The translations under genes and the position numbers were made by a program. A stretch of 64,000 bases of DNA from Trichoplax adhaerens (lineage: Eukaryota; Animalia; Placozoa), in NCBI RefSeq assembly GCF_000150275.1, contig NW_002060943.1, forward strand, positions 6,564,299 through 6,628,298. Direction: 5' to 3'. Positions 12,525 through 22,872 of the stretch are shown piece after piece. The notes beneath the pieces are model-generated. The model was not told the DNA's origin. It searched no databases and saw only the letters and a list, made by a program, of their open reading frames with translations. The number at the start of each line of letters is the position of its first letter. Position 1 is the stretch's first letter.

Positions 12525-15500
12525 CTAAAACAGTTGACTTTCCAGGTGGCCCTACGAAGAAGGATTATAACAGCAATCAAAAATTGATATAATAACAAAG
12601 TTTGCATCAACTGAATCCTACACATTAAAAGAATGGATCTTTATTGTAGCAATTGTCTGAAAATAGAATTATCCTATTCTACTATGATTTGGGCTTCTAC
12701 CTTAACTGCTGCACCAACATTATTAATATCTAATAGGAAAGTGTCATGACCATATATCGAGTTCAGTTCATAATAAGTAACTTTTTGATTGCCTAATATT
12801 TTAAGGAGAGACCAATCCGTGAATTTTTGTTTGTTAAATTTGAGATAAAACTAGTCTTACCCGCTTGTTTAAGTAAATCCGCAATTTCGGTCTGTTGCTG
12901 TATAGGAAATAGAATATCTGTTTTCACGCCGATAACCTATAGACAATACGTTTCGCAACAAATATGCGTTAATAAACTGCTGTTTAAGAAAATATATATA
13001 AAAAAAATGATAGATAGTCGGAAAACTAACAAGGGTAGGACAAATAATTCGTTTTACTCCTTCAACCATTGAAGGAAAGCCTTCTCCAATGTCAAACAGA
13101 TCAATTGCCTAATTTATTAATGGTGTTAATTAAGATAACAGATTAATACTTATATCAGACTCAATGTGACTATTAAATCATTTTCCAAACCTTGGATAGA
13201 TATAATAGAGTATTCGGATCATAAGTAAGAGAAAATTTTTCCCCCTAATTATACGTTAGCGCAAAGAGACAGTTACCATTAGATTATCAGTAAATAAAAT
13301 GATACCCTATCAAATACGCTAAGGTATTATTCGTACTTGATGTTCTATGTATTCTTCAATTTCAAATTGCGGGCAAAAGCTGGGTTCCTCAGTTCTCTTC
13401 CTATGACCGAAGCGAGTTTCCCACTCAGGTCCACTACGATATCCGATAGTACCAATCTCTCTATATAGCATATCCACATAGCAATTTAAGTATCAGGATA
13501 ACAAATACGTATACTGATATACTATTATTATTACTATCATGTCTTCAAGTAACGCTTAAAATACACTCCATACCTTGCTAATTTCATTCCTCTTTTAGGA
13601 AAGATTCCATTGTAATAATAGCCGCTATTCCAGTTTGGATCTGTCATTAAAACACGTCGTTGAAGGTAACGTAGGGCAATAGCTGTAGGTGTCGGTTTAA
13701 CACAACCAGAAATGCTAATAATTCTACAGTAATTAAAAACAGTATAATAATTAAATATTAGCTTTCAGCACTACCATGGACTTTTAGAGTAAACCTATAA
13801 ACTATATCAGTTACGGTAATTTTTCTCATCTACGATGCAAACGCTATGATTGTAAAAATAGTATAATTATTAAATGCTAGCTCTTAGCTCTGCTATGGAT
13901 TTTTAGAGTAAATCTACGAGTTATATCAGTAGCTATGATTCTTTTCATCTACAATGTCCATGCTATGATTGTGATTTTATTGACCTGTTAACACGATCCG
14001 AATATAACGCAGCTGTAGCAAGAGCCTGCATTCCTCCCATTGATGAACCAACCGCAGCATGAATCTGTAATGCAACATATCGTCATTTTATAAGTCCATA
14101 AGCGAAATCAATTTTGCTTGATTATTAATATCTTAAACATAAGAGTGTATCGATTTGAAATTCCTACCTTATTTATTCCTAAGTGATCTAATAATAAAAA
14201 TTGCGCTCGGATAGCATCAGGAATTGTTACAATAGGGAAGGTAGTTGCATAATGCTGTAAAAATAGTTATGACCGTAAGATATAACTTGGATTGTTTATT
14301 GCAATTAGAAAGGATAATAACATACAGAATCTGTGATTGGATTGATAGAAGAAGGCCCTCTAAACGAATAGATAGAGAAAAATTGAATTTATTGGACTAT
14401 GTTACCATCATCGACAGACGAATTGAATTATTTATTCGCCTCTACATTTTGTAGGTTTATCAGTTATACATCTCTGATAATGTTAGTTCACTCAGTTAAC
14501 TGAGGAAGATTATGACTAACCAGTATATATGATGCAATGGGCAATAAATCACAGTCTGAGCTATATGACTTACGTTGATCCGAAACATCCACCCAACAAG
14601 TTAGTGCAAATAACAAAGAATTTGTTTGTATCGACAGCTTTTCCAGGTCCGATAAAATCTTCCCACCAGCCGGGCCGTCGATTTTTCTTCAGTATTCATA
14701 ATTATAAAATGATATAGAATGAATGAATCCTACGTTAACGATGGATATTAGGAAGCTCCATTCGGTATACACTGCCAGAAAGCTTGCAATACCTTAAATT
14801 CAGCGCTGAATAGACAATTGATTAACAAACAAAGCAAACTTACCTCAGTACTTCTGGCATGTGAGGAGGCGGAAATGCCAGTTTGCAGTAAAACTGTATT
14901 ATCTTTACGTTCATTGAGTGTGCCCCAAGTCTCGTAAGCAATTTGCATTTTGGGTAGGACGCCATGTTTTAGCTTAAATACGTTGTCGTAGCGAAAAACC
15001 TCGTAACCATCGTGTAGTTGCTCGTAGTTAGGTTCCGGGCCGGGCGCAAATCTTGACAGCGTATAAAAGAAGGGGAAATTAATGATATGCCATTAGTACG
15101 AGTGCTTTATTTACAAGCTCTATGAACACTGGAATATGTTATCGATAATTCTAATAAGAAGCAAAGTTTTAGAAGTTTATGCACAAGTAATCTAGCAAGA
15201 TTGAACCATTGATGACTGCCATATATTGTTAGCTGGTATAAATATAGTAAGCGCAGTAGAATGAGACAGGAATGCTGAGCTAGACCACGTCAATTCAAGT
15301 CGGCGTCCATAAGAGTAGAATATCAAAGATTGATATGCGCTAGGAAACTTGTCGGTTTAAATCTACAATAGTTATAAGAGCTACTAATTGCTGTAAGTTA
15401 GAGACTAGAGTACGTAAATCAAAGTCGGTATTACATAATATTAGAATAGCAAAAGATACCAGTATCTTCTAGGTAAGTAGTAACTTTAAAGAATTAATTA

Positions 15501-20200: not shown

Positions 20201-22872
20201 GTACTGTACTTTATTAGAGATTGTTTTCTACCATCTCCAAATTGTGGCCCTGCTGCGAAAGTCATAATATACTGATCACACCATGCAATACCTTGAATTA
20301 CTCATCTTGCATCTTTTACTATACCAAGAATTTCTGAAATGCAATTATAAGCAGACCTCTTTTATTAGTTGGCATGATATGCAGAAACGCGAAATAGACT
20401 ATCGCTAAAATAGTGTCAATTTTTACTCTAACTCAGATTTCTTAAAATTTAGCTAATTTGGCCATAAATCTGCTGTAACTGAATTACTAATCAGAGCATT
20501 TGTTTTATAGACTCATTACTATCAGCCATTATTTACCTTAGTTGGTGGTGGTTTAGCAGACCTGCCAGAATGTACGAATGCAACAGATAGCCTGATACCA
20601 CCAGGTTGTACACTATTAAAAGATGAAGTCAAAGAATTTCAACCCAAACAAAACTGCTTGGTGACTGGCGATGGACATCAGGTCTTATATTGTGTTTACC
20701 AATAATAATATCTTATTTACTATTTCATTCAAATCGACCCTTTATCGTAGTAATATTAACAACAATACTCTTAAACAATTCTTACCTATTTCTAATAGGT
20801 TCATTATGAGTACTTGGTCATGGCAACCGGTATTGCTCTCAACTATGACAAGGTAGCACTTTGTATTTTGCACTTTTGCTCTAAATCTAATAATCGGTTT
20901 AAATATGTATACAAGATGGGATGAAATATTAGATCATTTAACACAATACAATTTAGGCTGCTCAAAATGAATAGATTACAGAATAACATTCAGTACTGAA
21001 CATTCTCCTTATTAAATGTACCTTGTACGTTAGTCACAAGTTAGGGCTAATCTTTTTATGTGCACTTCTTTACTCAGAATACTTACTTTTCTAATTGTTC
21101 ATGCTATTCTCGTGACTCAATCAATATATTAAGCGAGCTGTATTCATACCGAGTGAAAGCTTTCTCTCGATAATGTTATCAGGTTGAAGGATTAACGGAA
21201 GCTCTAGAATATAGTGACAACGTTTGTACCAACTATTCACCTGAGTATGTGCGCAACACTTATTACTACATGAAAAATATGACCAAAGGAAATGCTTTAT
21301 TTACTTTTCCAACTCCTCCGATTAAATGTGCTGGTGCACCGCAGAAAATTATGTATTTAGCTGATGCTCATTGGAGAAATGTAAGAACTTGTAGCTGTTA
21401 TACGAATTTTCAAATTGTCAGTATTAAAAGGAAATGATCTGCTGTTTCAAATGTACAGTTTCTTCTACGAGTTGTTCATACTTCTTAATCTAAATGTATT
21501 ATATCCTTTAGTATATTATATAAGCAAACAGTAGAAGCCTACAGTACTTTGGATGATTAGATATTTTTAATATCCAAGAATAATTCAATTTTATCTATTG
21601 CCGTAATATAAAAAATTTATGTTATCAGTTTTAATTTTATCAAGATCCAGTAGTGGCTATAAAACAACGGTGTTTTTAATTCTATTGAAGCATTTTATAA
21701 TTTTAAATGCTTTCAACTTAGGAGGGAGTTCGAGATAACATCAACATCCAATACTATACGGCCTTAGGTGTACTTTTTGGGGTTAAAAAATTTGCCGATG
21801 CATTAAATCAGATATGTGACGAGCGTAATTTAACTCGTAATTACCAACGTAATTTAGTCAAAATCGATCATGTAAAGAAAATAGCGACTTTCGAGGATTT
21901 GTCAAGCGAGAATAGAAAAAGAGAAGATTCTCCATACGATTTTATACACGTAACACCACCGATGGGACCTCAAGAGGCCGTAAAAGATAGTGAGTTAGCG
22001 GATTCGAATGGTTATGTCGATGTTGATAAGCATACACTTCAGCATGTTCGATACCCTAATGTTTTCGGTATTGGCGATTGCACTAACACTCCAAATGGTA
22101 AAACTGTCGCAGCAGTAGCTGCTCAACTACGAGCATTATACAAAAATTTGAAAGCAAGCGTAGCTGGCACACCATTGAAACCCAAGGTTAGCTAAGAGTT
22201 ATACGAGGATTGTCATATAAATTCACATTAATAACATGATACTCTATTTTATAGTATGCTAATGATATTAATTCATGCATACACGAAACAATATGCACAC
22301 AATGTCCATAATTATTAGGACATCATGCGTTTTGAAGGAGTGTAACTAATTGATTCAGTCAGTAATTACTATATCGGAAATGGCTCATTTGAATTTGAGT
22401 ATATCCTTCATGATATCAATATTCCGTTACTAGTATGACGGCTACGCTGCTTGTCCGCTTGTTACTGGCAATAGCAAGCTTATCCTGGCAGAATTTGATT
22501 ACGATAACCAACCGTTGGAAACCTTTCCATTTGATCAGAGTGAAGTAAGTTATAAAATAAATGATTTTAGGAAATATCATCACTGATTATTAGATGCTCA
22601 ACTAAAGGTGTCATTCTGCACGTTTCTATGATGCATTTTAGGAGCGTTATAGCATGTACCTCATGAAGAAATATTTTCTACCACCTCTATATTGGAAAAG
22701 TTTATTAAAGTATGTCTATTGAGTTTATTTTCTTTGGAAGGATGTGTTGCGTAAATAATATTTAATATTAACTTTAATCATATGGATAACTTTTAGGGGA
22801 ACATGGCTAGGCCCAAAAGAGGTTAGAAAAGGATTCCAAGCTGTGAAAAGACAAGTTGAGAAGGTTGCCTAG
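17293..22872 (+). CDS. SQOR: Sulfide:quinone oxidoreductase, mitochondrial (type II SQR), 8 exons
   Basis: Exons 17293-17514, 20511-20681, 20799-20852, 21183-21380, 21722-22186, 22434-22544, 22642-22709, 22797-22872. Motifs [62 protein letters not shown] and AEFDY...LETFPFDQS; both redox-active cysteines present. Confidence 0.96.
19010..19381. repeat. Diverged ~205 bp tandem duplication in SQOR intron 1
   Basis: GATG.AGATTAAGATT.TG.AATGA.ATCGCATAT...GGTGCAGTAA.CT...CTACGAGCCTTTC...AGTAGATA.CAGTACGAT.AAATGAAGCTAAA occurs twice. Confidence 0.9.

Follow-up and report, generated by a model that had tools for sequence, protein, structure and literature searches.

A stretch of 64,000 nucleotides of the Trichoplax adhaerens genome (contig NW_002060943.1, positions 6,564,299 to 6,628,298; the window hereafter) contains a gene for a Cys2-type serine O-acyltransferase on the minus strand and a gene for a sulfide:quinone oxidoreductase (SQOR) on the plus strand, arranged head-to-head. 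Their start codons are separated by 890 bp (16403-17292), and the coordinates, the orientation and the distance given by the original prediction were all confirmed. The same prediction had inferred from this pair a possible mini metabolic gene cluster. Comparison with other genomes did not support this part: the Cys2-SQOR linkage is neither an ancestral feature of animals nor a conserved cluster. The reading favoured here, with moderate confidence, is that of two ordinary nuclear genes for sulfur enzymes, predicted to be mitochondrial, that were juxtaposed in a lineage-specific manner, probably neutrally, and that have a promoter region in common. What is documented for Trichoplax is a complete Cys2/Cys1a route together with three CBS-like genes, no detectable sulfite reductase domain and a non-ancestral adjacency of Cys2 and SQOR.

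The genome searched was the 105.6-Mb assembly of 1414 contigs, in which the locus lies on contig C1414. All database, family and structure searches were conducted exon by exon, and joined gene models were used for alignment with homologues and for tblastn against fetched loci. Cys2 and its 10-kb flanks were compared in seven other holozoans. A tblastn search with the local SQOR model, which does not depend on annotation, detected SQOR in the Trichoplax sp. H2 locus alone and none in the 10 kb on either side of Cys2 in the seven. The immediate 5' neighbour of Cys2 is an actin-like gene in Branchiostoma, ORC5 in Halichondria, TMEM129 in Oscarella, a SAM-domain gene in Salpingoeca and a 529-aa gene without Pfam match in Capsaspora; in Nematostella it is prefoldin and in Owenia Cg6151-P, each followed by COBRA1. 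Five of these seven neighbours are also head-to-head with Cys2, and a short divergent spacer is therefore a common state for this gene while its partner changes freely. In the sister strain Trichoplax sp. H2 the same pair was found, a 454-aa Pyr_redox_2 gene being divergent from Cys2. The DNA of the locus is 99.3-99.6% identical between the two genomes and the H2 pair was rejected as independent evidence, since loci more than 99% identical are uninformative on conservation. The original prediction had held that an adjacency limited to this genome, combined with uncorrelated expression, would speak against it; the first half of this was observed, the pairing being confined to Trichoplax H1 and H2.

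Metagenome contigs were also scanned with Cys2 exon 2, which yielded 80 loci (L046-L125) totalling 734 kb. A SQOR relative was detected by tblastn in none of these 80 loci. In 16 of them a Cys1a/CysK-like cysteine synthase gene lies about 1 kb upstream of the Cys2/MetX gene in an operon-like arrangement. The Trichoplax locus resembles this prokaryote-type linkage in that a Cys2-family gene is physically joined to a sulfur-pathway partner. It differs in the nature of the partner, which is a synthase and never SQOR in the metagenome loci, whereas Cys2 of Trichoplax adjoins SQOR and has no synthase linked to it. No close placozoan relative came out of the exon 2 scan, the best match being 62% identical. 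A search for distant placozoans with SQOR exon 1 gave a single match (P0302, 70% identical) on a 613-bp ENA metagenome contig (L019), which, to judge from this first exon, may come from another placozoan-like animal. Its 87 bp of upstream sequence are too short to show a neighbour and the match was not retained as neighbour evidence.

In Nematostella (L016, 2511-24283) as in Owenia (L022, 1-23858), COBRA1/NELFB is found less than 10 kb upstream of Cys2, and this proximity in a cnidarian and an annelid may represent an ancient microsynteny. The Trichoplax COBRA1 is located on another contig (C1413:2633625), an indication that the rearrangement took place at the Trichoplax locus. In the literature on Trichoplax with SQOR or sulfide, and on serine O-succinyltransferase with sulfide, no description of a Cys2-SQOR linkage was found, in line with what had been supposed at the outset. 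The gene itself already bears the annotation cys2 in Trichoplax sp. H2, and the Cys2/Cys1a pathway has been published for most animal phyla (Salazar et al. 2022, PMC9506716). The latter work makes no mention of SQOR, of mitochondria or related terms, of subcellular location, of Trichoplax, of Placozoa, of the Cys2 gene neighbourhood or of the sulfide source.

Cys2 and SQOR are both expressed. Their transcription was followed over the region 15001-21000 in the contigs of three RNA-seq runs and one run of unrecorded type. Three exon joints were recovered in all four runs, namely 16203/15051 (Cys2 intron 1), 17514/20511 (SQOR intron 1) and 20681/20799 (SQOR intron 2), and the passage from SQOR exon 3 to exon 4 is backed by a loose contig end in each of them. 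On the Cys2 side, the contigs that include exon 1 extend to 16594-16612 in the four runs, giving the 5' untranslated region (UTR) a minimum extent of 16403-16612 on the minus strand; base-by-base reading of its part 16403-16560 revealed no upstream ATG. On the SQOR side, the furthest-5' contig starts at 17269. Between the two lies a shared spacer (16613-17268), 656 bp long at the most and free of high-depth RNA contigs, a putative bidirectional promoter core into which two low-depth contigs fall. The G+C content is 0.405 in 16001-18000 versus about 0.31-0.33 for the window. Recognizable elements of the spacer are one TGATGCAA site (16938-16945) and a CACGTG E-box (17202-17207). This E-box includes the ACGTG hypoxia-response core and precedes the outermost 5' end of the SQOR RNA contigs by about 60 bp. 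By its 5'-5' orientation, its spacer below 1 kb and the transcription of both genes, the pair fits the layout of bidirectional promoters, bearing in mind that contigs do not map exact starts. A single bidirectional promoter common to Cys2 and SQOR can reasonably be inferred, and goes no further than that because RNA contigs reveal neither true starts nor expression levels.

In the animal pathway, Cys2 is the MetX-G3c L-serine O-succinyltransferase and Cys1a the O-succinylserine sulfhydrylase; the Cys2 and Cys1a genes of Acropora loripes rescue S. pombe mutants, Cys2 rescuing a cys2 deletion (Salazar et al. 2022, PMC9506716). The same two enzymes, with the same Cys2 signature residues, are present in Trichoplax. 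Four cysK/CBS-like PALP loci were identified in the genome, one of Cys1a type and three CBS-like (C1413:4770099, C1408:1495249 and C1401:660975). The Cys1a-type gene lies on contig C1412; its first exon matches NF007989 with 215 bits, and the relatives of solved structure that match it best are cysteine synthases of bacteria. The partner synthase that the original prediction proposed to look for does exist in the genome. Since three CBS-like loci accompany it, both routes to cysteine appear to be retained in this animal. A domain search of the assembly found no sulfite reductase (NIR_SIR) domain, and the sulfide for Cys1a would therefore have to be supplied by the environment, by microbes or by catabolism. 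The committed enzymes of the pathway are not clustered, the sulfide-consuming Cys1a-type synthase being on another contig than Cys2 and SQOR.

According to the neutral reading, a rearrangement in the placozoan lineage would have placed Cys2 and SQOR head-to-head, and the 656-890 bp spacer would act as the promoter region of both genes, in which case some common basal transcription is likely. SQOR would oxidise H2S to persulfide and transfer the electrons to ubiquinone, and the unlinked Cys1a-type synthase would condense O-succinylserine with H2S to form cysteine. Several points weigh against a juxtaposition without consequence. A priori, Cys2 would seldom have a sulfide-handling gene as its head-to-head partner, the chance being roughly estimated at 0.1-0.3% (~15 of ~11,500 genes). 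Both enzymes would use the same matrix pool of H2S, which provides a functional rationale for their coupling. Six TGATGCAA sites resembling amino acid response elements (AARE) span the two genes and the spacer (local P ~3e-5) and one more is found upstream of Cys1a. Finally, the sampling of placozoans comprises Trichoplax H1 and H2 and leaves out Hoilungia, Cladtertia and Polyplacotoma.

The alternative that survives best, which is nonetheless unlikely, is that of an adaptive and co-regulated mitochondrial module for sulfide partitioning, in which one bidirectional promoter, possibly through C/EBP-ATF-type sites, would balance the oxidation of sulfide by SQOR against its fixation by Cys2/Cys1a. 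The head-to-head layout with no more than 656 bp untranscribed, the expression of both genes in the same libraries, their presequence-like N-termini, the presence of Cys1a in the genome and the TGATGCAA sites, all six of them non-coding, are consistent with such a module. Sulfide detoxification by mitochondrial cysteine synthesis has moreover been discussed for plants and fungi (PMC5799214) and, no endogenous sulfite reductase having been found, the pathway must draw on free sulfide. Against this, the pairing shows no conservation beyond Trichoplax H1/H2, Cys1a as the actual consumer of sulfide is unlinked, the TGATGCAA motif is not enriched at other candidate loci, and the ratio of Cys2 to SQOR contig depth varies about ten-fold between runs, contig depth being an unreliable measure. 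It seems improbable that a placozoan-specific rearrangement created one bidirectional promoter responsive to stress or amino acids, kept by selection as a switch that splits mitochondrial H2S between oxidation and cysteine. If true, this would be one of the rare cases in which a metabolic module of two genes has newly arisen in an animal. If selection keeps the linkage, an early-branching animal would have the detoxification of sulfide and the synthesis of cysteine from sulfide under a single control region, and the locus would offer a handle on the sulfide source of the animals using the O-succinylserine pathway, a question that the 2022 description of the pathway left open.

The six TGATGCAA sites, of C/EBP-ATF or AARE-like type, are distributed over 12602-18219 at positions 12602 (Cys2 intron 12), 14530 (intron 3), 15679 (intron 1), 16938 (spacer), 17659 and 18212 (both in SQOR intron 1). 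They are not copies of a repeat, their flanks being unrelated. TGATGCAA is the sole 8-mer not of low complexity to occur at least six times in 12525-18300. With a background of 0.10 per kb (15 sites in control loci of this genome totalling 149 kb), 0.57 sites would be expected where six were counted, hence the local Poisson probability given above, and about one cluster of this size per genome is expected by chance. The additional site at Cys1a lies about 800 bp upstream of its ATG. No enrichment of TGATGCAA was found at the ChaC, sestrin, two CTH-like and Cys1a loci (4 in 50 kb versus 15 in 149 kb of controls), and the motif was consequently dismissed as the mark of an amino-acid-response regulon. 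A search of the genome for ASNS gave a single weak match on a tiny contig and this gene was not located. The cluster is a lead and no evidence of co-regulation.

In Caenorhabditis elegans, the response to H2S induces sqrd-1 and cysl-2 together via HIF-1, the two genes being unlinked and regulated in trans. The likeness to the co-regulation proposed for Trichoplax is that of a sulfide:quinone oxidoreductase co-regulated with an enzyme of the cysteine synthase family in an animal exposed to sulfide. Nematodes possess neither Cys2 nor Cys1a (PMC9506716). Conserved head-to-head pairs of mitochondrial genes served by a bidirectional promoter, among them HSPD1-HSPE1 and HADHA-HADHB (Irimia et al. 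2012, PMC3514665), share with the Trichoplax pair the 5'-5' orientation, the spacer below 1 kb and the coding of functionally related proteins, which in Trichoplax are putatively mitochondrial. Those pairs are co-expressed and were kept from humans to unicellular holozoans (PMC3514665), in contrast with Cys2-SQOR, which is not conserved beyond Trichoplax.

A mitochondrial location of both Cys2 and SQOR is likely, as judged from their N-termini, from the location of fungal homologues and from the presence of succinyl-CoA in the matrix. The first 40 residues of Cys2 include 7 basic and 0 acidic residues, the first acidic one occurring at position 41, and the first 30 residues of SQOR include 7 basic and 1 acidic, which bears out the basic, acid-poor N-termini noted in the original prediction. 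By composition both are presequence-like, i.e. basic, hydroxylated and acid-poor, and stand ahead of the conserved domain. Succinyl-CoA, the expected acyl donor, is a metabolite of the mitochondrial matrix. The fungal MetX-type serine acyltransferase OpSat1 was shown by experiment to be mitochondrial and all fungal homologues examined have a predicted targeting sequence (Yeon et al. 2018, PMC5799214). OpSat1 and the Trichoplax protein are alike in being MetX-type serine acyltransferases of the alpha/beta-hydrolase fold with an N-terminal targeting sequence, a putative one in Trichoplax; they differ in that the yeast enzyme takes acetyl-CoA as acyl donor, and its gene is not described as linked to one for an SQR (PMC5799214).

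It is on these grounds that a location in different compartments appears rather improbable. Cys2 and/or Cys1a would then be cytosolic and SQOR attached to the inner mitochondrial membrane, so that the adjacency would be metabolically meaningless even with a common promoter. Such a separation could be accommodated by the N-terminal extension of Cys1a, about 40 aa with 6 basic and 2 acidic residues as read from the translation, which is weakly presequence-like, and by an internal methionine at Cys2 residue 37 from which a shorter isoform could arise. It is at odds with the absence of acidic residues among the first 40 of Cys2, with the mitochondrial fungal MetX-type homologues and with a donor expected in the matrix.

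The Cys2 coding sequence (12525-16402, minus strand) specifies 440 aa in 13 exons, with a start codon at 16402 and a stop codon ending at 12525. The spliced model was guided by homologues and by GT..AG splice logic, to which all introns conform. Exons 1 to 7 occupy 16402-16203, 15051-14844, 14686-14574, 14359-14326, 14254-14168, 14064-13985 and 13723-13574, and exons 8 to 13 occupy 13460-13337, 13244-13191, 13108-13031, 12936-12861, 12792-12701 and 12551-12525. In a per-exon profile search, nine of ten open reading frame (ORF) stretches between 16402 and 12677 matched the MetX models NF001209 and TIGR01392 colinearly over profile positions 5-369. The local model is 100% identical in alignment to the annotated protein of Trichoplax sp. 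H2 (P0244), which carries PF00561 and is named 'putative serine-O-acetyltransferase cys2 [Trichoplax sp. H2]'. Its identity with further Cys2 proteins, from holozoans and fungi, ranges from 54 to 59%, including 57% to a Cys2-annotated protein of Acropora digitifera (P0226), and the best database matches of its exons bear the name serine O-succinyltransferase-like. A profile search of the assembly found it to be the sole MetX locus.

The residues that mark serine succinyltransferases were listed by Salazar et al. (2022, PMC9506716). The Gly-Leu/Ile-Ser-Ala/Pro motif (52-55 in X. campestris numbering) is present as G-I-S-A within 'TGISASSHA', the equivalent in other animal Cys2 proteins being G-L-S-A/G in the alignment. 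The nucleophilic serine is followed by methionine ('GSSMGG'), serine-type enzymes having leucine or methionine at this place and homoserine-type enzymes tyrosine. The arginine of 'IALRY' and the aspartate of 'GHDTF' are invariant in the Cys2 alignment and, by their spacing, may correspond to the conserved residues at about Arg183 and about Asp360. These signature residues identify the protein as a probable MetX-G3c serine O-succinyltransferase, succinyl being a likelier acyl group than acetyl. The Cys2-type and SQOR assignments of the original prediction thus hold, the former being refined from a generic serine acyltransferase to this class. That the gene codes instead for a homoserine O-acyltransferase, or for an esterase unrelated to cysteine synthesis, is very improbable: the best NCBIfam exon matches are indeed generic MetX homoserine O-acetyltransferase models and many database relatives are named homoserine O-acetyltransferase, but the share of erroneous MetX annotations is estimated at more than 60% and Ser-Met instead of Ser-Tyr together with G-I-S-A marks serine specificity (PMC9506716), and the protein groups with animal proteins named serine O-succinyltransferase, of which the Acropora loripes member was validated by complementation. 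In Cys2 intron 1, an 85-bp stretch (15258-15342) gives no alignment between the local genome and Trichoplax sp. H2 and corresponds to an indel.

The SQOR coding sequence (17293-22872, plus strand) specifies 454 aa, the length of the gene neighbouring Cys2 in Trichoplax sp. H2. It starts with the codon at 17293, its stop codon ends at 22872 and its eight exons are 17293-17514, 20511-20681, 20799-20852, 21183-21380, 21722-22186, 22434-22544, 22642-22709 and 22797-22872. Human SQOR is matched colinearly by exons 4, 5 and 6 (E-values of 1e-14, 2e-44 and 5e-14, respectively). Exon 1 holds the FAD-binding GxGxxG motif as GGGSGG, the Rossmann motif starting at about residue 41. Both redox cysteines are kept, in exons 4 and 6 (IKCAGAPQK and AACPLVTG, versus VKCAGAPQK and TSCPLVTG in human). 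A second SQOR-like paralogue is found 2.7 Mb away on the same contig (C1414:9333466-9333714, minus strand), with 42% identity in residues 71-155 of exon 5.

SQOR intron 1 (17515-20510) measures 2996 bp and contains the two TGATGCAA sites at 17659 and 18212. RNA contigs extend from 17485 to about 18794, covering its first 1.3 kb, and no ORF above about 55 aa was found in this transcribed part. It could reflect retention of the intron, a non-coding RNA or the use of an alternative 3' end. The intronic contig of one run is rich in variants and has a depth close to exon level (27.5 versus 35-47). Further into the intron, 18995-19181 and 19200-19380 are diverged tandem copies, each about 185 bp long, with about 74% identity.

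Elsewhere in the window, two long intronless ORFs on the plus strand, 43940-45826 (628 aa) and 50348-51973 (541 aa), have no Pfam match. A third ORF, of 427 aa on the minus strand (2387-3670), likewise has no Pfam match, abounds in Pro, Ser and Tyr and contains repeats of the YPPSS type; it accounts for a local rise in G+C content (0.435) and in GC skew (0.31).

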